Positions 85 to 61,043 of a stretch of DNA of 64,000 nucleotides are shown here, piece by piece; within the stretch, counting starts at the first letter, position 1; the number at the start of each line of letters is the position of its first letter. Location: the NCBI GenBank assembly GCA_964188305.1, contig OZ076895.1; one strand, 5' to 3'. The stretch comes from Podarcis bocagei. Lineage: Eukaryota. The notes under the pieces are model-generated. The model had not been told where the DNA came from. It did no database searches and saw nothing but the letters and a program-made list of their open reading frames with translations. A program made the position numbers and the translations under genes.

Positions 85-286
85 CAAAGAAAAATTCACA
101 GATGACATTTGAAGGATTTCTAAGATACATGACATCTGAGGAATGCATGGTATTTAAATCTGAGCACAAAACTGTTTACCAGGATATGACCCGTCCACTA
201 TGTGAATACTTTATTTCATCCTCGCACAACACCTACCTCATATCTGACCAGCTAATAGGGCCGAGTCACCTGTGGGGTTATGCAAG
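85..286 (+). CDS. PLCZ1: PLCZ1 segment A exon (end of EF-hand region / start of catalytic X domain)
   Basis: ttctggctttcag acceptor and ag|gtat donor, 202 nt. Encodes (A)[15 protein letters not shown]...[36 protein letters not shown], containing the PI-PLC SSHNTYL motif and the PLCzeta-type 'LWGY'. Confidence 0.95.
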
Positions 287-1526
287 GTATTTGTGCCCAT
301 TTTAAAATAGTAGTTTATCAGGTAGAATAAGTAGTTCAGAGAAGCAGCGCCTCATGTTTTCCTGCCAGATTGCTGGTTGAGAATGTTTTTAAACTTTTAT
401 TTTTAAATAATGTTTTAAAATTGTGTTTAGTTTTTTGGGTTTTTTTAAAATCATTGCTGTGTTTGCTGCCCTGGGCTCTTTCAGGAAGAAAGGCATGATG
501 GAAATCAGATCATACATACATACATACATACATACATAACATGTTCTTCCAACTAGGCCTCTATGTGGGTATTGGCAGGAGGGTGAGTTAGTTGTAGGAG
601 ATTAGGATCCCAGCCAGCTCCTTATGGAATGAATATAAGAAAATGGATGTAGGGGGTGGGTAAATCTGTCAGTTTTGGTTTCTCGATTTCTTATTTTGCC
701 AATCTTAATATCAATTCTCCACATTTCCACATCAGTTTGTGTGGGTGTGTTTAAAAAGTCCTCATGAAAAATCACCAGCATTTTAGTGCATATCTCTCCT
801 ACGACAGACATTTTTATATGCAGTTTTGCCTAATAAACATTTTTTTTGCAGGCAATTTCCTCTTATACAACACATTTTAGTATGTTGCATTCACTAATAT
901 ACTCACTGTTGCCCACTTTCCCCTGGTATATGCATTTTTGCTTTCCATTTGATTGGAGAACTGCACCACAAGGGTTGGAGTGTGAATTAGGTAGATTTGA
1001 CTTTAAATGCAAAGTGGTATAGAAATTCCTCCCTCATTCTTAACTGGATGCAAAGATGCTCAGAGCAGCAAACCAGGGATGTAGTTTCCACCATTGCCTG
1101 GCCCCACTTGTGAGCTTTCATAGTTGGGCAGCCTAAGGGTTGCCTCTAGCTCTGCTTTCTCTGAAAAGCTGCTGTGAGTCAAATGGATCCATGTCCTATC
1201 CTTCAGGTGATGGTTCCTGATGGGAGTGGGAGTTGTGGGGTAGCTTTATTCACAGTGTAAGGTTCTTAGGAGGAGTCAAAGTCAGAGGAAGGCAAAGCAG
1301 ATACCAGGAATGCTGGGAAATATAGATGCTGTGAAAAAATTGCATGCATAAGGAGCACGCATCGCCCAGTAAGCAACTGTATGAAAGCACCCTTTGTCAG
1401 AGAGAAGGGTGCTAGCCAAATCACCTACCTAGGGTGCTATTTTGCATTTGTAGAGATTTGTTCCTTTATTACATATATTCCTCCTTTCTCCAAGGATGAG
1501 GTACCTGGCTCTCCCACTCTCCGTAT

Positions 1527-1672
1527 NNNNNNNNNNNNNNNNNNNNNNNNNNNNNNNNNNNNNNNNNNNNNNNNNNNNNNNNNNNNNNNNNNNNNNNNNN
1601 NNNNNNNNNNNNNNNNNNNNNNNNNNNNNNNNNNNNNNNNNNNNNNNNNNNNNNNNNNNNNNNNNNNNNNNN
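1527..1672. other. Assembly gap
   Basis: Run of N that covers a PLCZ1 splice acceptor. Confidence 1.
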
Positions 1673-1805
1673 AGGATGCCGCTGCTTAGAAATTGACTGC
1701 TGGGATGGACCAAACAATGATCCTGTTGTTTATCATGGACATACATTAACAAGCAAAATTAGCTTTAAGACCGTCATCCAGGTGATCAGCAAGTATGCCT
1801 TTTTG
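1673..1805 (+). CDS. PLCZ1: PLCZ1 segment A exon (X domain), 5' end hidden in the N gap
   Basis: Hand translation [44 protein letters not shown], then a gtagg donor. Contains the catalytic E-x-D and the second His. The acceptor lies in gap 1527..1672. Not in the ORF track. Confidence 0.93.
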
Positions 1806-1991
1806 GTAGGTACATGTGTGACAAATTGGGGGTCAGTTAACAGAGCACAATGACCAAGGTGCGTTTTGGCCATAGATAGAGTATGTGATGGTGTCCTACC
1901 CATGGAACTTTCTCCAAGAATGTTTGCCTGGCACTGACTGTGCAGAGCTATAGGTGAAAAATTCATATTTGCCCAAGCTCTTTCTTATGGA

Positions 1992-2081
1992 TATAGCTGT
2001 CAACATTTCCCATTTTTTAAGGGAAATTCCCTTATTCCAAATAGGATTTCTTGCAAGAAAAGGGAAAAGTTGACAGCTATG
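1992..2081. mobile_element. Short MITE sharing TIRs with 38831..39823
   Basis: atagctgtcaac...gttgacagctat termini with an internal cccttatt. Confidence 0.65.
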
Positions 2082-2704
2082 GTAATTATTTATTGCTGTT
2101 TCTGATTGTTTTCTGAGTTTTATTTTATCTTTATGCTGTTCTCTTACTATTGTTAGTTTTCTTTTCTTTTTTAATTAAGCTGATAATTGCATCCACCACA
2201 GTTGGGAAACTAGATGTTGTTGAATTCCAGTTCCCATCATCCCTGACCATGGGCCACGCTGGCTAGGGCTAATGGGAGACAAGAGTCCAACAACATCAAG
2301 TGAGCTACTGGTTCCCCATCTCTGCAACAGACTTTTGCATATGATTGAAGTCTCCCTGAGCTCGGTGGGACTTCCTTCTGAGTAGGCATCCATAGCATTG
2401 CCGTGTAAATATGCTAATGATATTTGCTTTTTGAATTTTAGCTTTGGGCAAATGAAAGGTGGTGTAGAAATGTCTTAAACTTAATAATGTTAAGAAATAG
2501 TGCATTTCAGGTTTTGCTGTTTTGACCATGTTTGCTGTGGGTGGGTAGGTGAATGAAAATGAATTAGAGAATTCTAAGTGTTGGAAAGGACCTGAAGGTA
2601 ATTTGGCCCATTCCTTAACCATCCCCACAAGATGAAACAAGTTGCAACAGTTAGAAAGCAGAGGTCACCAGAGGGCAAAAAGCCAGCATGTCAGTAGCCT
2701 TCTG

Positions 2705-5700
2705 TTTTTTTTTTTTTTATAAAATTTTTATTGGTTTTACAAAATTTTATAGAACAAACAAACACTTAAAAAGACAAACATACACGTATAATTTCATATC
2801 ATAATTTCATAAACCTCTTTTCTGGGACTTCCCCATACCCCCCCTTTCTGCATCCCAATGTCCATAATTTTATAGCAACTCCCATTTGTTACTTTCCAAC
2901 CTCTGTCATCTTAGTCATCTCTATATTCTGACCTTATATCACTGTATCCCTTTGTTCCTGAAAACCACAACACTCTAACATTCATTAAGTTTATAATAGT
3001 CCTTAAGATAACTTTTAAATTTTCTCCATTCTTCTTCCGCCGTCTCTTTTCCTTGGTCACGGATTCTGCCTGTCATCTCGGCCAATGTCATATAGTCCAT
3101 CACTTTCATCTGCCATTCTTCCAGAGTGGGTAGATCTTGTGTCTTCCAATACTTTGCGATGAGTATTCTTGCTGCTGTTGTAGCGTACATAAAAAAAGTT
3201 CTATCCCTCTTTGACACCAATTGGCCGACAATGCCCAAGAGAAAGGCCTCTGGTTTTTTAGGAAAAGTACATTTAAGTACCTTTTTCATTTCATTATAGA
3301 TCATTTCCCAGAAAGCCTTAATCTTCGGGCATGTCCACCAAAGGTGGTAGAAGGTACCTTCAGTCTCTTTACATTTCCAACATTTGTTATCGGGCAAATG
3401 ATAAATTTTTGCCAGCTTGACTGGGGTCATGTACCACCTATAGACCATTTTCATAATATTTTCCTTTAAGGCATTACATGCCGTGAATTTAATACCGGTG
3501 TTCCATAACCATTCCCAGTCAGCTGACATAATGTTGTGACCAACATCCTGTGCCCACTTAATCATAGCCGATTTGACTGTTTCATCCTGTGTATTCCATT
3601 TCAGCAACAAGTTATACATTCTGGATAAATTCTTAGTATTGGGTTCTAACAATTCAGTCTCTAGTTTTGATTTTTCCATCTGAAAGCCAATTTTCCTGTC
3701 CTGTTTGAAAAACTCCATTATTTGATGGTATTGAAACCAATTTTGTACTCTATGTTTCAATTTCTCATGACTTTGTAATTTCAACTTATCTCCATCTTGT
3801 TCCAAAATTTCCCAATACTTCGGCCATCCGACCTCCATATTGAGTTTCTTCACTGCCTTAGCCTCCACTGGTGACACCCATCTAGGGGTTTTGTTTTCCA
3901 ACAGATCTTTATATCTTATCCAAACATTGAACAATGCTTTTCTAACAATGTGATTTTTAAAGGCACTATGCAGCTTGATTTTGTCATACCATAGATATGC
4001 ATGCCAACCAAAAGCATTGTTAAAACCTTCCAGATCCAAAATGTCTGTGTTCTCGAGGAGCATCCATTCTTTCAGCCAGCAAAAAGCTGCTGCCTCATAG
4101 TACAATTTTAAGTCCGGCAGGGCAAAACCCCCTCTTTCTTTAGCGTCTGTCAATATTTTAAATTTAATCCTGGGCTTTTTGCCCTGCCAGACAAATTTCG
4201 AAATATCTTTCTGCCACCTCTTGAAACATTCCATCTTATCAAGAATCTGCAAGGTCTGAAACAAAAATAACATTCTAGGCAATACATTCATTTTAATCAC
4301 TGCAATTCGGCCTAACATTGACAATTTCAAATTTGACCATATTTCTAGATCTTTTTTAATCTCTGACCAACATTTTTCATAGTTATCCTTATACAAATTC
4401 GCATTTTTGGATGTCAGATAGACCCCTAGGTATTTCACCTTCTTGACCACCGTCAACCCTGTCTCCTCTTGGAATTTCTCTTTTTCCATATCTGTTAAAT
4501 TTTTCCCTAAAACTTTGGTTTTTTGCTTATTCAACTTAAATCCAGCTACCTGGCCAAACTGTTGGATTATTTCCAGGACCTTTTTTGTACTAGTGTTTGG
4601 CTCTTGCAAAGTCAGTACTAGGTCATCTGCAAATGCTCTTAACTTATACTGTTTAGCTCCGACCTGCACTCCTTTAACCTGCTGGTCATTCCTAATCATA
4701 TTCAGCAACACCTCCAGAACTGAAATGAAGAGTAATGGGGAAATTGGGCACCCCTGTCGTGTTCCTTTTTCTATCTTAAGTTCCTCAGTTACTACATTAT
4801 TTACAATCAATTTAGCTTTTTGTTCAGAATATATTGCAGCCATACCATTCTCAAAACCTTGGCCTACCCCCATCCCATGAAGATTCTTTATCATAAAACT
4901 CCAAGAAATATTGTCAAAGGCTTTCTCCGCGTCCACAAAAATCAGTACTGCTTTAGTATTTATATTCACCTCTAGCTTTTCCAAAATGTCTATTATATTC
5001 CTTACATTGTCTGCTAGGTGTCTTTTTGGGAGAAAGCCTGCTTGGTCCTTATGAATCTTCTCCATCAGCACTTTTTAAAATCTTTTTGCCAAAATGTCTG
5101 CAAAAATTTTGTAATCCACATTAAGTAGTGATATTGGGCGGTAGTTCTTCAGTTGAGTCTTTTCAGTCTCTGTCTTTGGTATGAGTGAAATATATGCTTC
5201 TTTCCACGATTCAGGTGCCTTTTTTCCCTCAAGGATCTCATTACAGACTTCTTTTAGTGGTTGAATCAACCATTCCTTCAGCGATTTGTAGTATCTTGAA
5301 GTCAGTCCATCTGGTCCTGGAGATTTGCCCAGTTGCATATTCTGAATGGCAGCCTCTATCTCTTGTTCTGTTATTCTCTGGTTCAGATCCATCTTGCTTT
5401 GATGAGAGATTTTTTGTAATCCATATTTATCAAGGAATTTGTCTATATCTTCTTCATTTTGCGGGCCTTGAGTATAAAGTTTTTTAAAATAACTCAAGAA
5501 GCAATTTCTAATTTCATTAGGTTTAGATATATTCTTTCCATCCACTTCTAGGCTTGTAACTGTATTTAGTTTCTGCCTTTTCTTCAATTGCCATGCCAGA
5601 AGTTTGCCACATTTATTTGCTGATTCAAATGTCTTTTGTTTCATCTGCTTTATCTTCCATTCAATCTCTTGGTTCATCAATTCCATATATTGTGTTTGAT

Positions 5701-5920
5701 ATAACTTAATCTCTCTTAAAATCTCCTGGGACTTTGGTTTTGCTCTTAATTTTTTCTCTCCTTCCTTTATCTTTTCCAAAATCTTTTCTTTTTTCTCATT
5801 TTGTTTTTTCCTCTTTATTGAGTTTTGTTGAATCAAGAAACCTCGCATCACCGCTTTGCTTGCGTCCCAGATCACTCTTTTCTCCACGTCAGCCCTCAAA
5901 TTTATTTCAAAATAGTCTTT
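2705..5920 (-). mobile_element. 5'-truncated L1/Tx1-clade LINE (ORF2 reverse transcriptase + C-terminal CCHC)
   Basis: ORFs 5075..5899 and 2975..5071 are in the same frame, separated by one TAA. Motifs KSPGPDG, YRPISLLNVDYKI, DAEKAFD, GTRQGCPISPLLF, FADD and CWKC...HLWWTC. Poly-A tail at 2705..2718; 20-bp TSD AGCATGTCAGTAGCCTTCTG at 2685..2704 and 5921..5940. Confidence 0.95.
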
Positions 5921-5977
5921 AGCATGTCAGTAGCCTTCTGGCATTTGTTGAACATGTGTGAACATAAACTGTGCAGG

Positions 5978-5978
<1 letters not shown>

Positions 5979-6012
<34 letters not shown>
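5979..6012. repeat. (GT)n microsatellite; other microsatellites: (CATA)n ~511-537, (CAT)n ~6320-6365, (AAAC)n ~14735-14776, (GT)n ~22741-22777, (GA)n ~32350-32372, (CAAT)n ~48180-48218, (ATT)n ~59998-60060 and ~60650-60693, (CCAA)n ~62981-63020
   Basis: Directly visible simple repeats. Confidence 0.95.
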
Positions 6013-6014
<2 letters not shown>

Positions 6015-6318
6015 GGCCAGATCTGCCCCCATCATCTGCACCATCTTTGCCACTCTTGACTTTCCCACTTAATGTAGTAAGGTCAGAAGAGGGATTTTCC
6101 ACATGCTTAGCTGAGACAAGAAGTGGATAGAGAAAGGGCACTCTCTAATAAACACTAAAACTCAGGGGTGTCCAATGATGCTGAATGCTGGAAGACTCAG
6201 TACAGGCAGAATGAGGTACTTCTTAACTCTCATTGCTCATAGTTAACCTATGAAATTCACTCCCACAACAAATAGTGCCAGTCAGTCAAATGTATTTGTG
6301 AAAAACTATTGGTCGTTC

Positions 6319-6356
<38 letters not shown>

Positions 6357-8637
6357 CCACCACCACTTTAACAGCACATGGGGCCCCAATGTTGTACAAT
6401 GAAATTTTGCTTGATCAGTTGGGCTTCTAATATAAAAGTAGAAACCTTATTATGTCATGAATTTATCCTCATCCATCAACAAATGACAGGTTTTCTCCCT
6501 ATTATTCAAAAAAGGAAACTGGAGAATTCTTTTTTAAAAAATAATCCTAGGAGAATTTAACAGGAAGCAATACAGTACATAATGAACAATATTTCCAACT
6601 CTCCTTGGCCACAGTATACAAACATTAGATTTGCAGGTATCCTGGTATATCTCCCACCCAAATATGTTGTGGGTATAGTTTGAAATCTCAAAGCTGTGCA
6701 TACCTTCCTCAACGCATCAACCTGTAATTAAAAACAAAACAAAACTGGAAGACCATGATTGGATTTCCCTGAATAAATTGGTGAGAATTACATATTTGGA
6801 TATGAGATCTACAGTAGCTAACAGAAGGCCCCACTCTTTAACTTCATTTATAATACTTTGCAAATATAGGGGTTGCAATCTTGCACACCATCAACAATCA
6901 GTCTATAATTGATTATATGGATTTCACATTGGCTGGCCCAGCTTTGCTTCAAATAATGGTCTTTTGGGGCAACCTTGAATCTGGCATATGCTGTAATTTC
7001 AACCAATATAGAAGCAAGGCAGTCTGATAATATGGCCAGGAGGGAACCTAACCATGGGATTGTCATCTGGGGAAGTTTGGAGGTGCAGCTGGCGGGAGTG
7101 GCACTAATAGTTCTGCACACTTTCCATGGTTTATACCAGCACAATCTTTTGAAGATGGCCTTGCTCTGCCAGGAAGCTTACTTTATGGCCACAGGCAAGT
7201 TCAATTTCTCATCCTAGCTTACCTCACAGAATTCTCGTGAAGAGAAAATGGGATAATCCGGAGTATTTTCCCTTCAACAAAGGATAAGATGAAATGTGGC
7301 AGATAAACTATTTCCATCTGGTGCCAAGGACAAAAATGAAAGAGGCTTTCACCTGTCAGTCTTAAAACTTTAGCATTTTAAATCAAAAGGCAATCTGGTT
7401 CAGTTGGTTTTGAAGGAGATTACACAGCCAAAAAAATATAAAGTAATTCTTGCACATACCTGGCATTTATTTATTAAGGGAAATCTTGTATACACTTATT
7501 TTAAGGTACTCTTTTCTCTTTGTATATGTCTGGTTGGCACCATAAACTAAAGCAACACAGTGGTGGTTGGTAGCCATTGCGATTGGTAGGGCAGAAGGTA
7601 AAGAGACTAACAGAAGGTGGAACCAGAGCCAAAGTTTTGCCCCAGTCCTGCTATGGCAAAGCTGGTTTAATTGCAAATGAGAGTCAGGCAGGTGGGGATT
7701 TTCTGAGAGCAGAGTGAGGTTGGTGGGGAAGTGACTCATTCACCCTAATGGACCAGTCTCCACTGCAGCAACAATGAAACTTCGGGATAGTAATCTGAAC
7801 ATGACTCACCATATATCCAAATCCTTTACAAGCTGCGGTTTGTAGCTGTAGGGCTGTTTCATGGCCAGTTTTGTTTCCACGTAATGCTCACACACATTTC
7901 CCCATGGAATATCTCTCGGGCTTTCCCACGGGTATAGCTATTTTTGGTCAGTTCCCTTTGCCTTGAAGCTGCCAGCGTCGCATAAATCAGTAGCTGTATC
8001 CAGGATGATCCTAGTTCATATGAGAAATCGCCACATTAATACAGTCCTGAGAATGCTTGAAGGAATATTGTGGGGTGAGGGAAAATGCCTATAGCCAAGG
8101 TCCAGAGAACCATGCTGCTAGTTCCCAAGGGACTTAGGGTGTCTGCTTCTCTTAAGAGCATCTCCCCCCATGCCATACAACAAACTGCTTTTAGAAAAGG
8201 AGTGTGTCTCCTCACCTCACCTCCCAGCCCCCACAAATCTTTTTGTAATATGGCATTGGCCTTACTTGAGTAAAGGGGAATAGCCAGAAAATCCCTTTGG
8301 GGATATCCGAGTTCTTGCGTATGCCTGAAGTAGCTCTTCGAAGTTTAACCTATCACTGATGCACACACATTACAATACCACCACTGGTTCTGTAAGGTAA
8401 AATGTATACCCAAATCCCAGAACAGCACCTGTGTGTGGTCTGTAGCACAAAAGAGAACTGTCGTTTCTTTGAGAGTGGTTGCTTCTGCCTAGACAAATCA
8501 GCTGGGATGTCGCAGTATTGTTTTGTATCTTTATTGCAGATAACAGTGCATGCTTTTCATAGTATTCTTTTCTCTTGTTTTATATTTTCATATTTGTGTA
8601 ACTGGGAATTACAGTATTCATTGAATTGTACTTCCAG

Positions 8638-8790
8638 GTCTCCGATTATCCTCTGATACTGTCTTTGGAGAATCACTGTAGCCCTAAACAGCAGGAAGTA
8701 ATGGCAGATTATCTGACAAATATCCTGGGTGACATGTTGGTTATATCTGCGATTGATGATATAATGCCAACTGAGCTCCCTTCCCCTGAG
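8638..8790 (+). CDS. PLCZ1: PLCZ1 segment A exon (X domain)
   Basis: cttccag|GTC...GAG|gtaac, 153 nt; [26 protein letters not shown]...LPSPE. Confidence 0.95.
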
Positions 8791-11421
8791 GTAACAAAAC
8801 TGAGTTGCTCTTTCATAAAAGATAACAAGGAGGAAATCACTGCAGTTGGCATGGTTATTTCCTAAGAAGTTTATCATGTTCCTCCCATTAAAATATGCAG
8901 AATTAACTACACCTGGAATGCAGTCTGTTTGGTATAGAGTTATTGTACAAATAGAAAACAACCAGTACACTCCACCCCCCAGATTAAGAAGAAAATATGC
9001 GTGTCAAAAAAATCAAGTGTAGACCAAAACATTGGAAATACAATACATTGTAGATTCCCTTGAACCTTCCAGTGCATGTATTCATGATTTATTATTACCC
9101 TAAGGATGATAACACACCTTATATTTGTTATGCGATTTTAGTTATGCGATTCCAAAACAAAAGCCTGCAACATGTCAGAAAGGTACTTGTGTGGAATGCA
9201 TTAAAAGTCTCACAATCTGAGCTCCATATCCCTCATTTGCTTTTCAAAGCAGACTTTAAAATATGCATTCTGGGAGTTTGCACATCCTTTCCCCCCCATC
9301 CTACATCTCCATTCCAGAGTTCTTGAATGAAAACACCAGATAGGCAACTGTACTTACTTGAGGTTGACAAGCATGGCTTGCCATGAAAGCTACTTGGCTG
9401 CAACCTGTTCTCTGTGTTGCCACAGAGAATCAGGACAAAAGAAAGGGGCCAATGACTTCATGCACTATCCTAGCAACTTTTCCCTATGGCAGCTTCAAGG
9501 GATGGCATTTGGAAAAGCTGGGATGGAGCACAACAATTGAGTGATAAAGATCGACACTTTTGTCCCAGCCTTTGTAGTTTAAAGGGCTTGTCTGCACCAG
9601 AGTTTAATGTGGATTTGAAGCTGCTTGTGTCTCTAAACTATTTGTGGCATCCACTCAACATCCCCCTTATTCAAGTGACAGCCCATGAACCACGTGTTGG
9701 CAGTGTGCACGAAAGCCCACCCCATTCTGCCCCCTTCTGGCGCTGAAAACGGTGGTCACTTTAGTGGTCGCGCATGTGCTGAAGTCACACAAATGGTGAG
9801 TTTCCTGTAGCAATAATGTGCGAAAAGGATCCCAGACCATTTGAATTTGAAAGGTAGCTATTTGAATAGTTTTATTTGCACAGTCCCAGTTTTTTATTTG
9901 GAGATTTGCCCACTGTTAACAAATACGTTCTAATTTTAAACCAGGAGTGAGCAACGCAGACCCAGGTGTTGAATGCTGCTGCCCTCCAGACCTCTCTGTT
10001 TGGCCCCTAGGGTTCTCATTGTGCCACATCCCTCACTTCCCTACTCTGTGCCCTCTTCAACTGCTTTTTGCTGGAATGTGTCCTTGGGCTGTAATAGAGG
10101 CAACTCCCCATTTGTGTGCGTCCAGGATATGCATGACCACGTGCCCTTTTTTGCACCAAAAGAGGGTGGAACAGTGGGAGGGCAGACGTGATGGGTGTCT
10201 CACTGTCGCACATGGTGCCTTGGAATGCAACCGCCATGTAAATGGGGAGTTGCCTGTAATGCTATTTGCTTGCCTGGATGAACAGATGAGTGTGGGGAGG
10301 TGTGTGGGCTGACATGCATGGCTGGAACAGAGGTTATTGTAGAAAAGTGAGAGTCACACCTGTTGCTCCACACTTTTGCCTTTGACCCCACCCACCATGG
10401 TGAGCATGTCCCCCCCCCCCGCCGCCCCTTGAAGGTTGTCCACAAGGAAATGTGGTGCTCAGGCTGCCATTGCATGTTTACAGCAACCTGATCAGCACAA
10501 GAGTTTAAACATGCAACTTTGGCAATTGGATGGGTTTTTTTATTTAAAAAAAAAGGAGAAGAAATGGGCTAAAGCCATCTCTTTCAGCTACGGTACACCA
10601 TTAAAACCTACACGGGAGTACAGTGTAATACTTTTTATGAGGAGAATTTAATCATACAGATGCTCAGCAGTACTGTTCTTAATTGCAAAAAAGGAACAAA
10701 TGGATCAGGAGAGAATTACAGATATAAAGCAGAACTCTTGGGAAATAATGCCATCTTGCAAGTACTGTTCACGTTTCTTGATTTCAGGTGGAAAGGGATA
10801 TAAATAACTTTAAATGCACTGCAGAACTCAAAAGATTTGCTGTAAATTGATTCAGGAGGTATGAGGACTTTGGAGGGGGCTGGAATTCCAGTTATTGTAA
10901 AATCAGAGTACCTGCCCTTTCTTTTCTCCTGTGCTATGGAAACTCAAAATGTGCTCTTTTGTCTGTGTGTCTTTTCTTCCTGTGTCATACCTCATTCAAG
11001 CCAAATTTTCACTAGAAATGTGAAAAATACCATCAGGATTCATTTGATCAAGATGATAATGCTTGCTTCGTATCTCCTGGCTCAAACTCAGGCAACCTCT
11101 GAGTTTAACATGTGAGGAAAAACCAACAAACAAAGCAAACACCTCAACAGCACAGCAAGCAGTGCCAGTGAACAGCTAGTCATGTGTTAGGCACAGCTTT
11201 GGGCTAACAGCAAAATAGGAACCCATGAGTCTCCAGAGATTCTTGGATGTTGTCTCCCATTGCCCCGACCATTGGCCATGCTGGCTGGGACTGATGGGAC
11301 TTGGAGCAACATTTTCTGGAGGCCCATAAGTTCTGGATCACTGTCTTCCATTTTTATTACTTTTTCTTCTTCCTTCTTGTGTTATGTATGATTCTTAATA
11401 CCTACTGCTTTCTTATCACAG

Positions 11422-11643
11422 TCACTGAAATTCAAAATAATGATTAAAAATAAGAAAATTGGGACACTTGAAGAAACGCTTGCAAGGAAGGGCACGGATA
11501 GCCATGGTCAGACAGGGGAATTTGAAGAGGAAGAAACAAGCGATGAGGAGCTGGACGACAACCCTTCGCACCCCAAGCAACCGCTGCTGAAAAAGAGAAG
11601 GGCACGCTGGAAAGGCTCAGCTCCACCTCGGAAAAAACAAAAG
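11422..11643 (+). CDS. PLCZ1: PLCZ1 segment A exon (end of X domain + XY linker)
   Basis: tcacag|TCA...AAG|gtatga, 222 nt; [24 protein letters not shown]...[12 protein letters not shown]...KKRRARWK...PPRKKQK. Confidence 0.92.
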
Positions 11644-12970
11644 GTATGACCTGAAGTCATGTCTAGTTAGATCCTGGGTTTAAAACCTACCAGAAAGCAA
11701 ATACACCAGCCCTCCCTCCTCTTTTTGACATCTTTTTCACTGCTCTAAGATTTACTGCAATGTGCTCTGTGTAGGGTTGCCCTTTGGTCCTGAGGCGGCA
11801 GCTAGTGTAACACCATCACAAAACACCTTCCTGTTGCATTTGCTCTGGCTGCCAATTTGCTACTGAGCCAAGTTCAAAGATCTGGGGCTAATGTAGAAGG
11901 TCTTTGCAGCACATGGCCAGGTTGCTTGAGAGACTGCCTTCTCCCCTCTATTTCCAGGAAGTCAGTGTGTTCTGCAGGGGAGCTTCTCCTTAAGTCTGAA
12001 GCTAGTGGATGCCTGCTCTACAGTAACTCAGAGCAGGGCTTTCAGTGTGGTTGCCCCTGTTTTGTGAAACAGTATCCCCTGTCAAGATACGACAGGTGCC
12101 AACTACCTGCACTTCCTGCAAACAACTGTCTGCAGCCTTAATCAGTATGTTCCATATTGTATAGTTTAACCATTAAGTGTTACACAGAAAGGATGCAAAT
12201 GTTGTTTTACAGATCTTCGGTGCGGTATAGTAGTTAGACACCGTATATTTAAAGAACATCCCCCCACCCCTAAGAATCCCGAGAATAGTAGTTTACCTCT
12301 AGCAGAGCTGCAGTACTCAGCACCCTTAGCAGACGATAGTCCCTAGGATTCTTTTCGAAGGAAAATGTGCTTTAAAATGTATAGCGTGTATCAGGAATGC
12401 CAACTTGGTTGTGACTGTGGGTGCCTGTGGCTGTGGGTGCCGTGCAGTGTGCATGGTCCTGGTACCAAAATTCATGGGTGCCGGGCCCCTTCATGAGGAA
12501 CTTTGTGGGTGCTTGGGCACCCAGGGCCCCAGGGAGTTGGCACCTGTGGTGTGCATGCAGCTTCAGAATGGGATCGGGAAAACATGTTCATATCCCTATT
12601 CATGAAGCTGGCTAGGCTAAGTCACTATCTTTCAGTCTAGACTACTTCTTAGGGTTGCTGTGAAGATAAAGAGAAGGGAATCCATGTATGCTGCATTGAG
12701 CAATGAAGGTAGAAAACATATATGAATAGTGATTTGACTATGAGTTGCAGCCAACTGAATTCTACTCAGAGTAGACCTATTGAAATTAATGGACTTAGTT
12801 TTGTTTCGTTATTTAATTTTAATGAGTTTAACTCAGAGTGTGATTGACATTGAATAGAACCCCTTTCCTGGTGTGCTTTCAACAGAAATTGACATCTCAG
12901 TTGAAACTGAGATAGTATCTTTAAAAAAACATATTAACAAACCTTCAGTCATCTCCCATATTATTTATAG

Positions 12971-13127
12971 ATGAAGAAAATAAAGATTGCCTTGGCACTG
13001 TCAGAACTTGTGATTTATACCAAATCTCGGAAGTTTGTAAGCTTTGAAGACTCAAGAGAAAAGCAGTTTTTTTATGAAAACAATTCAATTGGTGAGCTAA
13101 AAGCCCGAAAGCTGGCAAAACTCGCAG
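12971..13127 (+). CDS. PLCZ1: PLCZ1 segment A exon (start of Y domain)
   Basis: tttatag|ATG...GCAG|gtaatg, 157 nt; [25 protein letters not shown]...[17 protein letters not shown]. 'ENNSIGE' is PLCzeta-typical. Confidence 0.95.
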
Positions 13128-14346
13128 GTAATGTTGCTGTTTCCTCTTGCTTAAGCCTTCTGAACTGTCAATAAACTTTATGAGGCAGCTTGTCACCAGC
13201 TGGCAGGCAGTGAGATGTTTAGAGCGTTGATTCAGCGCTCTGCATGAGTTGAGTGGCTAAAGGTTTGTGTTGATTGGCTGTTAGCTACATTTCATCCAAG
13301 CCAAAAATATACGAAAAGAGAAAAATATCAGTAAGTGGAAGCTTGCAGGGTTTTGTTTCTTTAAAAAGAAAAGAAAAAAAGAAATCTCGGATAAGTGACT
13401 GCAATTTTGTTCCACTGTCCAGTGTTGCTTGGATCCAGTCCAGGTGGAGTTGAGCCTGGCCTGGAACGCAGGAGTGTATCTTCCCTTCTGCCTCTCTCTG
13501 CAGAAAATACGTCAGTTGGGTTTTCCGTGGATTGACATTTGTTCAGACTGAGTGGTAAACTGCAGGTTTTTCCTGGGGAAAGTGGTGGGACAAAAAAACC
13601 CAAACAAATGAACAAAAACTCCCACTCACTCTCTAAACTGGTTTGGCATAATTTGTTCATTGCTAACCCTGATTAAAATAAGCCTGAATACGCTTCTCAA
13701 TTGATACAGAGAGTACTGTTTTCATCAGGGTTTCCAAGGTAAGTTCATGACCAGATTGAACCAGGTACATTTTAATCAGGACTAGGAATGATCAAATGTA
13801 ACACCACACCAGAAGAAGGGTGTGGGAAGTGATTTGTGCCTAAGTAGGACGCAGTAAGGATGAAATAATGGTTTTGAGCCTGTGACTGTCTCTCGATTCA
13901 TAAGAGCTGTTTCTACTGTGTTGGACGTAAAGCCTCCAGAAACAGAAATATATCAGGTACAGGCCAAACCGCATGTTATTTTATTGATGCATTTTGGGTG
14001 CTTGAATTTTACTTGGGGTGGGGATCAGCAGCTGTGAGCTCCCTATTCAGAGCTTGCTCCTCATGTGGATCAGGGCCTCACACTCATTCCCTATTGAAAA
14101 TTACCCCCCTCTGGCTGCTGTTTGCTGCTGAGTGCCTTCTTTTGCAGTAAAAAGCCTTTTCAGGGGCAAGTAGCAGGTATAGAGAGGGAGGGTCAGCAGG
14201 AAATGGGTGTGAGCCCCTAATCTGCATCAGGAAGATGTTCCAGATTGGGCTTCATGGCTGCTTTTTTTCTTCAAAATGGTGGCTAGTTTAAAAACACTGT
14301 CAAATAAGTGAATAACAAATAATTGGGCCACAGTATTATCATTATC

Positions 14347-14659
14347 GGGACGCGGGTGGTGCTGTGGGTAAAACCTCAGTGCCTAGGACTTGCTGATCGC
14401 ACGGTCGGCGGTTCGAATCCCTGCGGCGGGGTGAGCTCCCGTCGTTCTGTCCCAGCTCCTGCCCACCTAGCAGTTCGAAAGCACCCCTAAGTGCAAGTAG
14501 ATAAATAGGTACCGCTTTATAGCGGGAAGGTAAACGGCGTCACGCTGGCCACATGACCCGGAAGTGTCTTCGGACGGCGCTGGCTCATGGCCTCTTGAGC
14601 GAGATGAGCGCTCAACCCTAGAGTCGGACACGACTGGCCCGTACGGGCAGGGGTACCTT
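14347..14659 (+). mobile_element. Sauria SINE
   Basis: gggacgcgggtgg... B box ggttcgaatcc, core ccagctcctgcccacctagcagttcgaaagca...agataaataggtaccgc; ttatcattatc duplicated on both sides. Confidence 0.88.
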
Positions 14660-19531: not shown

Positions 19532-19556
19532 AATATCTGGAAGGCTGAGGGTTTCC

Positions 19557-46200: not shown

Positions 46201-48180
46201 CACTGAGATGTCAGAGTGGTGACAGCCCAGAGGAGGACTTTCTCTGTGGCAGACCACAAATTGTGGAAATCCTTCCCTAAAGAGGTGTGTCTAGTTAGGA
46301 AAAGGAGAATCTGTCAACTTCAGTTTTTCTCAGTTTCTCATTTTTCCAATCTTGACTTCAGTTCTGCACATTTCCATATCAATTTGCAATTACAAAAAAG
46401 AACTTTGTGAACAGTCACCAGCATTTGAGTGCATTTTCCCCTTAATACAGCGGTACCTCAGGTTAAGTACAGTACTTAATTCGTTCCGGAGGTCTGTACT
46501 TAACCTGAAACTGTTCTTAACCTGAAGCACCACTTTAGCTAATGGGGCCTCCTGCTGCCACCGTGCCGTCGGAGCACGATTTCTGTTCTCATCCTGAAGC
46601 AAGGTTCTTAACCTGAAGCACTATTTCTGGGTTAGCGGAGTCTGTAACCTGAAGCGTATGTAACCTGAGGTACCACTGTATACAAATTCTTACAAAGCAA
46701 TTTCCTCTGATGCATTTTTTCATGGCGTTTTCAAAAATACAGGCAAGACGGCATTTATGCGGGGGTTGTGTTCCGAGGCACGGTGCGCATCGTCAGGCTG
46801 CACATTAGCTCACCTCGGCCCATTCTGGTGCCGAAAACACACCGGCACCAGCAGTTGTGCGCGTGCCAAATGCACACAAATGGGGAGTTGCCTGTACATG
46901 CATTTTTAATGCACATATTATCTCAGTATATGCATCTTTTTACACCTCCTTCGGCTGGAGAACTGCACTGCAAAATATGGAGAAGTGCACATTCCGACAG
47001 ATGTCTGTGTTTTCTTTGGTTCACAAATTGGTTCACACTTTCAGAAAGTGCAAATTTGATATGTCTGCCTTTAATGGTAACGGAATAGTATTTCTCCACC
47101 ACCACTACTCTAGATCCATCTGTACTCAGCTTTCAACTGTTGAAAAGTATTTCTGAGACCTCGTACCTTATCATTGTTAATGCTTGACTTTTGTTGCATA
47201 TGTGTGGTTATTTATTTGTATTGCTTGTGTTGTAATCTGCCCTGGGATCACCTCAGGGTGAGAGGCGGGGTATAATCATAACGATTAGTCTACAGTTTTG
47301 GCCACTCAGAATTACTGTCTGTCATCGATTGCGAAACTAATATTTTAATTCATCTAGGATTTGGCTACGGAACACAAAGACTCTATACTGGGGGGGATGG
47401 GGATTGGGGACCTCATATGTATGTTGTATCTCTTTATAGGGTTTGGAGGCTTGTGAGACTTTTCAAAGCAAATGTTGAAGATGTGCAGGGAAGGGGGAGA
47501 ATTGTGTGAGCAAAATTCTGCTGGTGCAGCATGGATGCAACGCTTTCTACTTTAGCCTGATCCGCTGCCAAATACCTGGGAATGGAATTTGACCCGTGTC
47601 TAAATCTGCCTAGATGCATAATAATCCTGTCCAGAAGATTGCCCATTGCACCAGAAAGGATTGCCACCTTTGAAATTGCATGCCAGGAAATAAATATGTA
47701 TGTCTCTTAAATGTTCGTGCTAATGGGAACCGTTTGCAAAGAGAGGGTAGTAATTCCATGAAGATAACTAAATGACAATGGACCATGAAAAACTCATTAT
47801 AATATCCTCGTGATTAGTGGCCTACTCTGTGCACTCAGTGACTTCCCTTATGCACATATTCTCCAAGGCAAACACTTCAGCAAATGTAGCAGAAGTGCCA
47901 GTGGGGAAAGGGGGGGAAAGAAATCTTAATGAATAAATAATTCAATTGTCTAAGACAATGTTCATATTACACTGTTCCCCCTTCAGGTATCACTTTTCTT
48001 TGTCTAACTGGGCAGCGTTCAGCTGAATGCTAATGGCCCTCAGAAATGTTCCGGAGCTTTTCACGATGGGCTGCAAAGCATGTCCTTAAAGCAACTTGAT
48101 AACAGCCTAGTTCTCACTGTGGTGCCTGAATTACACCATAGAAGACTGAAAGTGGAAGTGTGAATATTTCAGTCAGTCAG

Positions 48181-48212
<32 letters not shown>

Positions 48213-48524
48213 CAATCAGTCCCTGTGCTTAGAAGGCTAGCATATCAGGGATATCAGCTTTTTCGTTATGATAGAAGTTTATAAAATTATGCATGACACA
48301 GAGAAAGGTATTTCTTCCTCTCACAACACTAGAACCCACGAACACACTTGGAGGCAGTAATGATTCTGAATACCAGTTGCTGAAAACCACAGGAGGGGAG
48401 AGTGGTCTTGTTCTCAAATACTGCTTGTAGGTTTCCTACAGGCATCTGATTGGCCACTGTGTGGTCAGGATCCTGGACCAGATGGCCCATTGGCTTGATC
48501 CAGCAGGCTTTTATGATTGCATCA

Positions 48525-48872
48525 TCATCATCATTTCTTTATACCCCGCCCATCTGGCTGGTTTTCCCCAGCCACTCTGGGTTGCTCCCAACAGAAATTA
48601 AAAACACGATAAAACATCAAATATTAAAAACTTGCCTAAACAGGGCTGCCTTCAGATGTCTTCTAAAAGTCAGATAGTTGTTTATTTCCTTGACATCTGG
48701 TGGGAGGGCGTTCCACAGGGCAGGCGCCACTACTGAGGAGGCCCTCTGCCTGGTTCCCTGTAACTTCGCTTCTCACAGGGAGAGAACCACCAGAAGGCCC
48801 TCAGAGCTGGAGGTCAGTGTCTGGGCAGAAAGCTGGGTGTGGAGACTCTCCTTCAGGTGTACTGGCCCAAGA
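48525..48872 (-). mobile_element. L2/CR1-group LINE 3' fragment
   Basis: Near-identical to 21670..22000 (tataccccgcccatctggctg..., aaacagggctgccttcagatgtc). Confidence 0.82.
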
Positions 48873-49441
48873 TTTATCTCTAGCATCCCTGCAGTGGGTC
48901 AAAGTCCTCTCCAGAGCTGTCCTTATTTCTTAATCCATTTAATAAATGTAAATTATTTGGTACATAGAGCGGAAATAATGCAAAACCCAAATAATGCAGT
49001 CAGTTCAAGCAAGCCACTCTGCATCATATGGAAAAAGAGAAAGGGGGAAGTTCTTAGGATGACCAACTATCCAAGTGTATTCAGAAATATGGGAGCAAGA
49101 ATTGAATCTAGCTCCCTAGTTTTCTCAAAAGAACCAGCTGAGGCTCGCAAACGGTTGGTTGTTTAAAGAGAAATAATATTTTGAGACATACATATGCAGT
49201 ATAGGGCTTCTCTCTGTTTCGTCGTTCTACTCTTCATCTTCCTTTTCATATTAAAGGACAAAACCGTATTTTGCAACGGATGCTGGTATTTTGCCCAGCA
49301 CATGAGGAATGAAATGAAATAACTCCTGGCGAGACACTACTGACCTGCGTACTATTCATTCTGCCAAAGGACTCTGCATTCCCATGAACTATCAGGCAAT
49401 AAATCAAGGGAATCAATGTGAATGTACTCAGCGATTGTTGT

Positions 49442-49447
49442 TTTATT
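49442..49447 (-). terminator. Polyadenylation signal of CAPZA3
   Basis: tttatt on + reads AATAAA on -, about 80 nt downstream of the stop. Confidence 0.6.
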
Positions 49448-49525
49448 TGGCCAATATTTCATTCACACAAGACACTTCGGCAAGCATAATGGGACATCAC
49501 TTCAGGATGCCTTCACCTCTCTCCT

Positions 49526-50350
49526 CTAACTAGTCAGCAGTTTATCCCAGTTGATGACAGTACGAGTGACTGGGAGCGGTCTGCGCAGTGCTCTCCATAT
49601 TTTATCCGACAACTTCTGGAGCCTCTCCACCAAATCAGTCTGGAATTTGCTCTCTTCGGCTTCAACTAATTTCACAAACTCTATAGCAAACTGGACACGG
49701 CCAGTTATGTATATGGACTCTCTAACATCTTTGCTTGCTGTCCAGTGGAGGTTAGCTTTTTTGAAATAGTGCGCCTGCAGATCAATTTTCCCTGTGACCT
49801 GTGCTGTTGGCGGTGCAAAAGCGATAGTCCACTCAGATTTCCAAACGGCATTGCAGATGTCGTCGTGCCGATGGCCTTCAACGCAGACCACGAAGAAGGG
49901 GTTGCTTCCGATCATTTTTTTGTAGACACGGCAGTCTCCTGAAAAGAAGTGTCTCCTCATGTAGGACTCCAAAATGATGTTGAGTGTTTCCCTCCATAAC
50001 TCTGCACGATCTTTCCTGATGCTGTGATAAAGCAAAACTTTATCAACTCTTTTGGTCAGGTGATCAAACCTGAAGGAAAGTTTGATCTGTGGATCAAAGA
50101 AGCGGTTTCCTCCAAGATCGTTGTAGCGAGTCACGAGAGCATTCTCCCCTTTTACACGCACAGCTGTGAAGTTTTTCCTGGTGTGATTGGCACACACCTG
50201 AGCGGCCTCATACCTCATGAGATGATCGTCGTGAGCCAGAATGCGGAGGTCTTCAAAAACATTCCTGTACTCGCCTGGGGGAGCCTGTTGAAGCAAGCTG
50301 CAGATGACATTTGTTTTCTCCTCCTCAGATAATTCAAATTCATTAGACAT
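49526..50350 (-). CDS. CAPZA3: F-actin capping protein alpha-3 (testis-type, single coding exon), 274 aa
   Basis: MSNEFELSEEEK...LLQQAPPGEY...LGGNRFFDP...WKSEW...QAHYF...ALRRPLPVTRTVINWDKLL: capping-protein alpha motifs, an intronless CDS, and head-to-head orientation with a PLCZ1 5' end. The true ATG is at 50350 (the ORF track starts at an upstream GTG). Confidence 0.93.
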   Translation of the reverse strand: MSNEFELSEEEKTNVICSLLQQAPPGEYRNVFEDLRILAHDDHLMRYEAAQVCANHTRKNFTAVRVKGENALVTRYNDLGGNRFFDPQIKLSFRFDHLTKRVDKVLLYHSIRKDRAELWRETLNIILESYMRRHFFSGDCRVYKKMIGSNPFFVVCVEGHRHDDICNAVWKSEWTIAFAPPTAQVTGKIDLQAHYFKKANLHWTASKDVRESIYITGRVQFAIEFVKLVEAEESKFQTDLVERLQKLSDKIWRALRRPLPVTRTVINWDKLLTS

Positions 50351-56079: not shown

Positions 56080-56475
56080 AGCCGCGGCGTTTCGTTGGCA
56101 ACGGCCTGCGCTGTTATGACGTCGGTGACGTCGGGAGCCGAGTGTGACGCGGCCCATTGTGTGACGTCAGGGAGCTCCCCAGCTGCGCGCCCGTGGGGAG
56201 GCACCGCGACCGCCCCCGCGCCTCCATCGCCTCGCGGACACCGGCGAGGGCGGTCGCGCCTCCGGGCAGGAGCCTGGAAGACCCTCGGGCGGGCGGGTAG
56301 GCGGGCTATGCCGCGCTGGGAGCTGCTGAGACCATCGCAGTAAGGAACAGGCGCGAGGAGTAGGCGGAGGAGGCAGGACCACCAGCAGCAGCACCATGGA
56401 GAATAAATATCCTTCCTTCAGGGGCGCGGGAAGGGAGCCACTTCGCCCACTCCGTCGTGGAATCAGGGGGCGAGA
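56080..56475. promoter_or_regulatory. CpG island / putative bidirectional CAPZA3-PLCZ1 promoter with CRE motifs
   Basis: The only strongly CpG-rich non-repeat stretch in the window. TGACGTCG at 56117 and 56126, TGACG at 56145, a perfect TGACGTCA at 56162..56169, and GC boxes (GGGCGG) at ~56250-56300. It lies between the 5' ends of CAPZA3 (-) and PLCZ1 segment B (+). Confidence 0.8.
56396..56406 (+). CDS. PLCZ1: PLCZ1 segment B first coding micro-exon (MEN + part of K)
   Basis: Kozak-like gcaccATGG; ATG GAG AAT AA is followed by the U12 donor ATATCCTT. It joins the next exon in frame to give MENKWF. Confidence 0.88.
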
Positions 56476-58703
56476 AGCCCCCATGGAGAGATGACCTTGG
56501 GGTCCTCAGCAGACGCCCCCCAGCATAGGAACCAGCTCCTAGGGTCTGAGGTTCCTTTGACACCCCCCCCCCAAATCTTTGAAGGAGCATTATTCAAATA
56601 GTGTGCATCTGCCGCTTCATGTGGTCAACTCTGCAGGCTAGGGTTTACCTCTCTCCCCCCCCCCCCAATATTTTACTCAAGTTGGCACCCTGCTCCCCAG
56701 ACATAAACAGAGAATAAATTCAGTAAGCCAGCAACTTTATGCACATTCAACTTGGGTGCGTTCAGCTTTAGGCACGGAGTAGAATTTTTTAATTTTTTTT
56801 AAAGACTTTGGTGATGCCACCCGCCATTGCACCCAGCATGTCTTTGACGAGACACGATTTTGGCTTTTGGCGCGATCCCTGGGGGTAAGTTGCAGGCTTA
56901 CTGTAGATCATCATGACCTTTGCACCCTGCTTCCCAGCTCACCTCTCTTGGAGCACCTGGGAAACATGTCAATCACTCTGTGCATTTTTTTTCCTTTAAA
57001 AAAGAACAAGCATAAATGAACAATTTATGGGAGAACACAAGTAGGATTAGCTGTCCATACACCCCTGCCATGAGACCTTGAGGCAAGCACCCCCAAATTC
57101 GGCCCTCCAGATGTTTTGGGACTACAACTCCCATCATCCCTAGCTAACAGGACCAGTGGTCAGGGAGGATGGGAATTGTAGTCCCAAAACATCAGGAGGG
57201 CCAAGTTTAGGGATGTCTGCCTGAGGGATGCTGCTCCCTGCTTCCTCAGTAAAGCCCACTCCCTGCTTCCTTCAAACAGATAATGTGCCCCTTCCCCAGA
57301 ACTTAACCTGTCACAAGTTACCTCCTCCCACACATGGCATTTAATAAGTTGCCTGGTCAGCAGAATGATAATATAGTATATTAATGTTGAAGACTATGAC
57401 GGGTACCCAAAGGAGGACGTCTCCAGTGGGAGAGATTCCACAAGCATGCAGTGGAATCCTAGTAGCAGTTCCCTTTAACCTGGTAAATTTTTAGGATCCA
57501 CGTTTTTTCTGTGATTGTAAAATGTACCGTATTTTTTGCTCTATAAGACTCACTTTTTCCCTCCTAAAAAGTAAGGGGAAATGTGTGTGTGTCTTATGGA
57601 GCGAATGCAGGCTGGGCAGCTATCCCAGAAGCCAGAACAGCAAGAGGGATTGCTGCTTTCACTGCACAGCGATCCCTCTTGCTGTTCTGGCTTCTGAGAT
57701 TCAGAATATTTTTTTTCTTGTTTTCCTCCTCCAAAAACTAGGTGCGTCTTGTGGTCTGGTGCATCTTATAGAGCGAAAAATATGGTAAATTGTTTTATAC
57801 CATTTTTTAACTTGGCATTTGAATTAAGCCACCTTGAGTCCTAGACTGNNNNNNNNNNNNNNNNNNNNNNNNNNNNNNNNNNNNNNNNNNNNNNNNNNNN
57901 NNNNNNNNNNNNNNNNNNNNNNNNNNNNNNNNNNNNNNNNNNNNNNNNNNNNNNNNNNNNNNNNNNNNNNNNNNNNNNNNNNNNNNAGGGTGAAGGGCAG
58001 GTAAATAACCCAATCTCTTTATAAATTTCCAATCACCTGCAGGTAAGTGACTCACAAACACCCTCCTCCCACGTTTTCTTTAAACAAAGGGAGAACCAAA
58101 GCTGAGAGTTCCTTCTCCACAGTTACATTACTAAGATGCCCAGATGCAAGTACACAGTAAGCACTTGAGCCCAGTTCCCTTTCGGGGGACAATGCCAGCC
58201 GCAAAGCGAAGTGACTCTCCAAAATGACCTCCCCTCCTTCGCCAGCTTTCCCTTATTACCAGCTTTCTATTGTACAGTTCTTTTCTTTCATACACTGAAG
58301 TCTCATCTACTTGTACAGAAATGTGTTGTTTCTAGTCTACGGAATGGTTCCCTGTTTCAACGCACGTGGAACACTATGTTTATAGAAGGGGAGAATTTGT
58401 CACCTTTCCCATGAAAGGAACAATTTCCTCTTGCAGGGATCCTTTGCCTGGAATGCTGCTATTCCACAGACGTCTTTGGAACCTGATCCACAACAATGTT
58501 TAAATAAAATACTTGGATCTAATTAATTCTGCCCCCAGCTCCTGCTTCACAAGTGGGAAATGGACTGGGCCATTTGCAAAAAAAGAAGAAGGGGAAAAAA
58601 GTGTATAGTTCCTCCTTGCCAACATCAGTCACTTTTTTTTGAACTGGAAAAAAGAGAGAATGCCAAAATTATCTGGAAAATTCCTTAATTTGCTTTTCTC
58701 TAC
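56407..58703 (+). other. U12-type (minor spliceosome) AT-AC intron in PLCZ1 segment B
   Basis: 5' end ATATCCTTCC, branch sequence TTCCTTAAT at 58681..58689, 3' end TAC at 58701..58703. Confidence 0.9.
57849..57986. other. Assembly gap
   Basis: Run of N within the U12 intron. Confidence 1.
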
Positions 58704-58827
58704 ATGGTTCATGGACATCATCTTCGATGAATTTAGAGATGGCAAGATCAATCTAGATAAGACCTTGAAACTGCTAAATAAGTTTGACGTCAGTTACGAC
58801 TACGTTCATGTGAAAAAGGTGTTTAAG
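58704..58827 (+). CDS. PLCZ1: PLCZ1 segment B exon (EF-hand 1)
   Basis: 124 nt; (K)WFMDIIFDEFRDGKINLDKTLKLLNKFDVSYDYVHVKKVFK|gtgaga, matching the PLCzeta N-terminus. Confidence 0.93.
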
Positions 58828-60060: not shown

Positions 60061-60062
<2 letters not shown>

Positions 60063-60140
60063 TAACAATGCCCGTTCCCTTTTCACTTCACTCATCTACT
60101 GGCTTGCCCTCACAATCACGAAGGCTCACAGACTGACTCT

Positions 60141-60546
60141 ATAATAATAATAATAATAATTTATTACTTATACCCCGCCCATCTGGCTGGGTGTCCCCAG
60201 CCACTCTGGGCGGCTTCCATAAAAACCAAAAATACAGTAAAATATCACACGTTAAAAACTTCCCTGAACAGGGCTGCCTTAAGATGTCTTCTGAATGTCA
60301 GGTAGTTGTTTATCGTTTTGACATCTGCTGGAAGGGCGTTCCACAGGGCGGGCGCCACTACCGAGAAGGCCCTCTGCCTGGTTCCCTGTAGCTTTGCTTC
60401 TCGCAATGAGGGAACCGCCAGAAGGCCCTCGGCACTGGACCTCAGTGTCCGGGCAGAATGATGGGGGTGGAGACGCTCCTTCAGGTATACTGGACCGAGG
60501 CCGTTTAGGGCTTTAAAGGTCAGCACCAACACTTTGAATTGTGCTC
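60141..60546 (-). mobile_element. L2/CR1-group LINE 3' fragment
   Basis: ORF 60245..60532 (LVLTFKALNGLGPVYLKERL...FRRHLKAALF) is the same family as 21748..22035; (AAT)n tail. Confidence 0.85.
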
Positions 60547-60647
60547 TAGTGAATTAATTTTATAATGAAATGATTTTAGAATGTTGTACTATTATTGTTA
60601 GCTGCCCTGAGCCTGGCTTCGGCTGGGGAGGGCAGGATATAAATAAA

Positions 60648-60694
<47 letters not shown>

Positions 60695-60811
60695 GTGAGT
60701 GTTTCTTAGAAAAGCTTCGAACTATGTCAAAGTGCTCATTGTTTTGGTGTGAATACTGCCACATAGTGCTTTATTTATATTTATTGCCAACTCTTCTTTT
60801 TTTTAACATAG

Positions 60812-61043
60812 AAAAATGACAAACAGAAGTCTGGACTTATTACCATGGAAGATTTTAGGGCAATTTATCGAACGCTTCTGCACCGACCGGAACTTCACGA
60901 ACTCTTCAGCAGCTACTCGCCAAACAAAAAAGTTCTAACAGTATCAAATCTGTGTGACTTTCTTAGAAAGGAACAGTTTGAACTTGATGTTAATGAAGCA
61001 AGAGCTGTGTCACTCATTAATATGTTTGAACCCATTGACGAAG
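60812..61043 (+). CDS. PLCZ1: PLCZ1 segment B exon (EF-hands 2-3)
   Basis: ttttaacatag|AAA...GAAG|gtacac, 232 nt; KNDKQKSGLITMEDFRAIYRTLLHRPELHELFSSYS...FLRKEQF...FEPIDE. The gene continues beyond the window or elsewhere. Confidence 0.93.

Follow-up and report, generated by a model that had tools for sequence, protein, structure and literature searches.

Phospholipase C zeta (PLC-zeta, encoded by PLCZ1) is the main egg-activating sperm factor, and in mammals and birds its gene is treated as single-copy and linked to CAPZA3 (PMC9175550, PMC4834118). In human, PLCZ1 and CAPZA3 are placed back-to-back and have a bidirectional promoter in common (PMC4834118, PMC9175550). The corresponding locus of the owl Strix aluco comprises a CAPZA3-like gene, a 52-kb PLCZ1 that begins 340 bp from it and a convergent gene of 1283 amino acids (aa). 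By its position this last gene would be PIK3C2G; Pfam searches of the open reading frames (ORFs) of the owl gene downstream of PLCZ1 gave no match. Here, we describe a stretch of 64,000 nucleotides from the lizard Podarcis bocagei (assembly GCA_964188305.1, contig OZ076895.1; the whole stretch is hereafter called the window), in which PLCZ1 sequence is found on both sides of CAPZA3. The arrangement very probably reflects a tandem duplication of PLC-zeta, i.e. two genes of the same orientation with CAPZA3 between them, the window spanning the junction. The upstream PLC-zeta gene is referred to as copy A and the downstream one as copy B, and their exons are numbered 1-13.

Copy B diverges from its neighbour CAPZA3 on the opposite strand, as PLCZ1 does from CAPZA3 in mammals and birds, and the exon structure, including an exon of 145 nt, and the domain order (EF hands, X, Y, C2) also match those of mammalian and avian PLCZ1. 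What distinguishes P. bocagei is the apparent second PLC-zeta gene, placed tail-to-tail on the other side of CAPZA3. The distance also differs, since in the owl about 340 bp lie between the called genes, whereas about 6 kb (50351-56395) separate the CAPZA3 ATG from the ATG of PLC-zeta exon 1 in P. bocagei; in Rhineura the two coding sequence (CDS) starts are about 2.3 kb apart. Members of the PLC-delta family (PLCD1/3/4) have the same X/Y barrel, EF-hand_like region and C2 domain, but the best full-length match to the window is PLCZ1, and no PH family is listed for the products of the relatives.

PLC-zeta exons on both sides of CAPZA3

Domains and homology were searched exon by exon, using Pfam and tblastn. 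The main elements of the window are as follows.

85..38639, plus strand: 3' part of copy A, coding exons 4-13, from the X domain to C2 and the stop codon (tblastn, Pfam)
38640..49528: spacer of 10.9 kb between the copy A stop and the CAPZA3 stop, tail-to-tail, holding the gap 43088-43255
49529..50350, minus strand: CAPZA3, a single intronless coding exon of 274 codons (ORF; stop codon 49526-49528)
56396-61043, plus strand: copy B exons 1-3 (5' part)
1527-1672, 43088-43255 and 57849-57986: the three N runs of the window

In tblastn searches with PLCZ1 of Strix aluco (637 aa), the PLCZ1 coding exons were each found once in the window, in a permuted order. Owl residues 126-637 aligned with ten plus-strand exons (87 to 38630), while residues 6-124 aligned with 58705-58827 and 60818-61042. 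Copy B exon 3 and copy A exon 4 are consecutive exons of one gene structure: copy B ends in phase 1, with a donor GT at 61043, and position 85, where copy A begins, is preceded by AG, in matching phase. The two parts have no exon in common because the window opens in intron 3 of copy A and closes in intron 3 of copy B. No internal duplication of the window was revealed by self-BLAST, which returned only short interspersed repeats. An earlier reading made from the letters alone (the sequence-only reading) had placed PLCZ1 sequence on both sides of CAPZA3, and had noted that the two segments have no exon in common and that the second ends in phase 1 exactly where the first begins; tblastn and Pfam recovered all of these elements at the same places, and the exon map and splice phases agree with it.

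CAPZA3 loci with 10-kb flanks were taken from the chromosome records of P. muralis, Lacerta agilis, Zootoca vivipara and P. lilfordi and compared with the window by BLASTN. The same order, i.e. a PLC 3' end, CAPZA3 tail-to-tail with it and then a head-to-head PLC 5' end, was found in five lacertid assemblies (P. bocagei included), and the four other loci are also like that of P. bocagei in orientation and approximate spacing. The window is collinear with all four from 39.6 to 64.0 kb. In P. muralis a single collinear path leads from window position 60141 to 39824, and in P. lilfordi the path leads from 64000 to 39567 with 92-98% identity, the overall nucleotide identity of the window to these two species being about 96-97%. 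Within the spacer (38640-49528), collinearity covers 39824-48602 in P. muralis, 39567-48602 in P. lilfordi, 40400-50702 in L. agilis and 38416-50702 in Zootoca. The sequences flanking the gap 43088-43255 are neighbouring and collinear in P. muralis (117 bp between them) and P. lilfordi (77 bp), as are those flanking the gap 57849-57986 (104 and 59 bp, respectively), and in L. agilis and Zootoca both flank pairs keep this collinearity, though with indels.

In Zootoca (GCA_963506605.1, OY735911.1), the annotation places one PLC gene on each side of CAPZA3, both on the same strand and separate from each other. The gene head-to-head with CAPZA3 encodes 718 aa, and its CDS begins at the equivalent of window position 58660. 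The tail-to-tail gene encodes 685 aa and has its stop at the equivalent of window position 38639. This stop lies 9.8 kb past the CAPZA3 stop, compared with 10.9 kb in P. bocagei, and the last exon of the upstream copy is identical in the two species. Both Zootoca products match EF-hand_like, PI-PLC-X, PI-PLC-Y and C2. The head-to-head PLC genes of the remaining species encode products of 743 aa (P. muralis), 637 aa (L. agilis) and 691 aa (P. lilfordi), so that the lengths of the PLC products of the lacertid relatives vary from 637 to 743 aa.

The tandem duplication of PLCZ1 around CAPZA3, which the sequence-only reading had proposed for this lizard, thus finds support in the order common to four other lacertids and in the two annotated Zootoca genes; its restriction to one lizard does not hold. 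Since the arrangement is common to Podarcis, Lacerta and Zootoca, the duplication would predate their split, and its age can be put, from these loci, at no less than that of their common ancestor.

Assignment to PLC-zeta

The best full-length representative for the copy A exon at 87-284 was PLCZ1 of Strix aluco (637 aa). Summed over the window, the tblastn score of this protein was 889 (62% identity), and those of other PLC representatives were 518 at most. The domain order of EF hands, X, Y and C2 was recovered by Pfam across the window, its halves coming from the two gene copies, and no PH family was found among the products of annotated relatives (623-743 aa). As to the position beside CAPZA3, copy B is head-to-head with this gene and copy A is not, being tail-to-tail. 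A word search with owl PLCZ1 yielded no squamate PLC-zeta protein among the 120 matches listed, which were from birds only.

A search with the exon-4 ORF returned seven short ORFs, mostly bird-, turtle- or mammal-like; one contig is squamate-like. The latter, a Logan contig of run SRR22184600, carries at 627-828 an exon-4 homologue that is 88% identical to the copy A exon, and the similarity reaches about 70-80 nt into both intron flanks. It differs from copy A by 9, 6 and 9 nt at the three codon positions, respectively; against the owl the numbers are 11, 9 and 25. The even spread over codon positions between this homologue and copy A exon 4 hints at fast protein evolution, and the homologue itself may be the other paralogue or else a distant or fast-evolving orthologue.

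Coding capacity of the upstream copy

The features of copy A are listed below.

85-286; gap-1805; 8638-8790; 11422-11643; 12971-13127, plus strand: first five visible exons
15249-15365; 27467-27639; 34102-34234; 37163-37312; 38551-38639, plus strand: remaining five exons
1527..1672: N run in which the second visible exon (X domain) loses its splice acceptor and an estimated 12 nt
38637-38639, plus strand: stop codon TAA (from the sequence)
38678..38683, plus strand: AATAAA, putative polyadenylation signal, 39 nt past the stop (from the sequence)

AG/GT was found at all visible exon boundaries, phases are compatible from exon to exon, and no in-frame stop is present in any copy A exon of the window. 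When exons were analysed separately, PI-PLC-X was matched at 87-284, 1674-1805 and 8641-8790, PI-PLC-Y at 12971-13123, 15236-15367 and 27469-27639, and C2 at 37162-37314; exon 4 (87-284) gave in addition an EF-hand_like match (E-value 2.4e-4). The X and Y halves show their catalytic motifs in the exon translations ([27 protein letters not shown] and [16 protein letters not shown]; motifs read directly, [53 protein letters not shown]); their assignment to catalytic residues presumes what is established for the PLC-delta1 structure. The stop at 38639 followed by a polyadenylation signal, which the sequence-only reading had also pointed out, corresponds to the TAA at 38637-38639 and the AATAAA at 38678.

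One copy A exon is interrupted by the gap 1527-1672, which lies outside every locus fetched from the relatives. It hides about five residues between the first two motifs and leaves positions 33-38 of the Pfam X domain uncovered. For the truncated exon the sequence-only reading had assumed 145 nt: the owl homologue does have this length, with the same phases, while 133 nt of the P. bocagei exon are visible and the rest lies in the gap. The reading frame would, on this comparison, run on across the gap.

The last exon of copy A (38551-38639) is identical to that of Zootoca in 89 of 89 nt and 29 of 29 aa, and the adjacent 3' untranslated region (UTR) and the flank are 93% and 90% identical, respectively. 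Because this exon is 100% identical while its flank is only about 90% so, the comparison speaks for constraint on copy A after Podarcis and Zootoca had separated. Taken as a whole, the visible part of copy A looks functional, as judged from its exons. The copy A sequence was also recovered in DNA contigs, with 0 differences in one run from the same organism and about 1% differences in a run from another study; the depth of these contigs is k-mer depth without a genome-wide baseline and gives no copy number.

The introns of copy A contain several repeats. A LINE-like retroelement occupies 2975-5899 (minus strand), in the intron right after the gap-cut exon; its adjoining ORFs of 698 aa (with a reverse-transcriptase domain) and 274 aa are open, and given these open frames the element looks young. 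Very high-copy repeats (11083-11464 and 12420-12801) flank the exon of the X-Y linker; their summed contig word depth amounts to tens of thousands, and the RNA runs also contain reads of these families. Another intron carries an uninterrupted ORF of 373 aa (19341-20579) for a transposase of the Tc1/Sleeping-Beauty type, with the HTH_SB, HTH_Tnp_Tc3_2 and DDE_3 domains. Located 46 nt upstream of it is a tRNA-Ala(TGC)-like sequence, which scored above the Rfam tRNA threshold and was the only Rfam match in the window.

CAPZA3 and the downstream copy

The following features belong to CAPZA3 and copy B.

45294-46295: second, weaker conserved block past the CAPZA3 stop
47543..48148: conserved non-coding block, 1.4-2.0 kb past the CAPZA3 stop, a marker of the ancestral 3' flank of CAPZA3
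56160..56437, plus strand: conserved first exon of copy B with a putative promoter region, ATG at 56396 (cross-species identity)
57849..57986: assembly gap (N run) in intron 1 of copy B, touching no exon
58659..58827, plus strand: copy B coding exon 2, first EF-hand region (tblastn; donor GT)
60812..61043, plus strand: copy B coding exon 3, EF-hand_like, ending in phase 1 (Pfam E-value 8.6e-14 at 60812-61042; AG and GT)
61044..64000, plus strand: start of copy B intron 3, collinear with P. lilfordi to the window end

The CAPZA3 ORF matches F-actin_cap_A (E-value 7.8e-66, residues 17-273), and its product shares 96-98% identity with the Podarcis, Zootoca and Lacerta proteins named F-actin-capping protein subunit alpha-3 (98% with that of P. 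lilfordi); an exact look-up of the P. bocagei CAPZA3 protein gave no record. No second CAPZA3 was found in lacertids, there being one per species among all CAPZA3 relatives found, which lends no support to a duplication of the whole CAPZA3-PLCZ1 cassette with both CAPZA3 genes retained, the other possibility raised by the sequence-only reading; a decayed CAPZA3 copy might still lie upstream of the window. For the block at 47543-48148, identity is 81-84.5% with Rhineura, Tiliqua, Anolis sagrei and Elgaria, and 96-98% with lacertids. Mismatches in this block are without codon periodicity, and it could be a regulatory element under deep conservation or else belong to a long 3' UTR.

Copy B leads from its start codon straight into the EF-hand exons. 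The block comprising its first exon (56160-56437) is 71-82% identical in Rhineura, Sceloporus, Tiliqua and Anolis and 95-97% identical in lacertids. The annotated CDS starts of Rhineura and Tiliqua map to the ATG at about 56396, the very start codon proposed by the sequence-only reading, and that of L. agilis (interpolated across indels) lies within about 25 bp of it, while the CDS models of P. muralis, P. lilfordi and Zootoca begin instead at the ATG at 58660. The CAPZA3 models of two Podarcis (293 aa) carry an extra upstream coding exon. In view of this exon and of the 6 kb between the two start codons, the promoter shared by the two genes may lie near 56.2 kb, with a 5' intron in CAPZA3.

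Exon 2 of copy B has 94-98% aa identity in lacertids and Rhineura, and exon 3 has 88% to Rhineura and 99% to P. lilfordi. No PLC exon was detected in 61044-64000 by tblastn with owl PLCZ1; the 691-aa PLC gene of P. lilfordi continues past the fetched locus at the position of the window end. Long (ATT)n microsatellites are located beside SINE-like repeats in intron 2 of copy B (59956-60045 and 60596-60694). The L. agilis exon homologous to 60812-61043 aligned in two overlapping pieces in different frames (L. agilis locus 251-480), which suggests a 1-nt indel in the record or a different splice use.

Alternative explanations

Several observations weigh against a duplication of PLC-zeta. The window includes neither the 5' exons of copy A nor the 3' exons of copy B, so that no exon was seen twice in P. 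bocagei, and one copy A exon is cut by a gap. That both genes are full-length is taken from the automatic annotation of one relative (Zootoca), in the form of Pfam family lists. In contigs of two DNA runs, searched over 8600-14300 at 80% likeness, no clear second, diverged copy of three copy A exons was present, and exon pieces of 150 nt are possibly not placeable in such a search. The depth on three copy A exons was zero in two RNA runs (related species, tissue unknown); like the contig result, this is a weak negative. Part of this evidence would also be accounted for by a scaffolding error, in which the contig with exons 4-13 of a single PLCZ1 was misplaced across the gap 43088-43255: the two parts make up one complete exon set without overlap, the first A exon follows directly on the last B exon in the gene structure and fits it in phase, and a gap of estimated size lies between the parts. 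A phase match, however, is expected of paralogues with the same exon structure, and in Zootoca the sequence continues into the last exon of a PLC gene with an annotation of its own. The flanks of this gap are collinear neighbours in two relatives (P. muralis and P. lilfordi), and in the other two (L. agilis and Zootoca) they are collinear apart from indels. Because they are collinear in four other lacertid assemblies, mis-scaffolding is very unlikely, and the contig mis-ordering that the sequence-only reading had kept as a real alternative is contradicted.

It is also improbable that copy A is a partial or decaying duplicate, i.e. a pseudogene or a copy of 3' exons alone. The window does not reach its promoter and exons 1-3, one of its exons is interrupted by a gap and the RNA runs gave no support, all of which would suit such a remnant; on the other hand, ten exons without a stop or frameshift, canonical visible splice sites, intact catalytic motifs and a last exon 100% identical to that of Zootoca over 89 nt, next to a flank of about 90%, would not. 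Moreover, the 685-aa Zootoca product has an unmarked EF-hand_like match, and exon 4 alone barely gives one (E-value 2.4e-4); because exon 4 alone would barely score, the Zootoca gene probably has its own exon 3. A larger, yet still minor, share of probability falls to copy A being an older squamate or sauropsid paralogue, which was kept farther from CAPZA3 or lost in other lineages. The 10-kb flanks in Rhineura, Tiliqua, Anolis sagrei and Elgaria stop 0-3.6 kb past the last conserved block (45294-46295), and the copy A stop is 6.7 kb past this block, so a second gene at that place would escape these flanks. The exon-4 homologue of SRR22184600, 88% identical to copy A and possibly the other paralogue or a distant orthologue, would also fit an older origin. 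Against it, neither annotation nor tblastn placed a PLC exon in the 10 kb downstream of CAPZA3 in any of five non-lacertid squamates, and a single PLC gene is called near CAPZA3 in the non-lacertid squamate loci: in Rhineura, Sceloporus, Tiliqua and Anolis sagrei only the head side of CAPZA3 carries a PLC gene within 10 kb, and in Elgaria no PLC was called or found within 10 kb on either side. Because the 10-kb flanks end short of the equivalent of the copy A stop, these loci set no age for the duplication beyond Lacertidae.

Significance of a probable second PLC-zeta gene

Under the tandem duplication favoured here, copy B would have kept the ancestral head-to-head place beside CAPZA3, as in birds, mammals and other squamates, and copy A would be the added gene, its 3' end lying 10.9 kb past the CAPZA3 stop. 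Both copies are predicted to encode active PLC-zeta, with EF hands, an X/Y catalytic barrel and C2 and without a PH domain. Delivered by sperm, such an enzyme would hydrolyse PIP2 to IP3 and, through the resulting calcium release, activate the egg. Transcription of copy B would presumably start from a promoter region common with CAPZA3, and that of copy A from one beyond the window, and the effect may be a higher dosage or divided roles. We found no description of a lacertid PLC-zeta duplication in the literature searched; the duplicate is visible in the public Zootoca annotation, yet it seems undescribed.

For annotation, the permuted exon order should be regarded as real, and pipelines should neither "correct" it nor fuse the two genes. 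Lacertids are egg-layers with physiological polyspermy, and parthenogenesis has repeatedly arisen among them, some lineages reproducing without sperm. It is a speculative idea, with a small chance of being right, that the two lacertid PLC-zeta genes took different roles, for instance one as the sperm-borne egg activator and the other differing in expression (by germ-line stage or in the ovary, say), calcium sensitivity or potency. If the roles did diverge, lacertids would be a natural system for studying what determines the dose of the egg-activating enzyme and where it comes from. A conserved second PLC-zeta in this family would in itself constitute a natural experiment on the dosage and divergence of the egg-activating enzyme.

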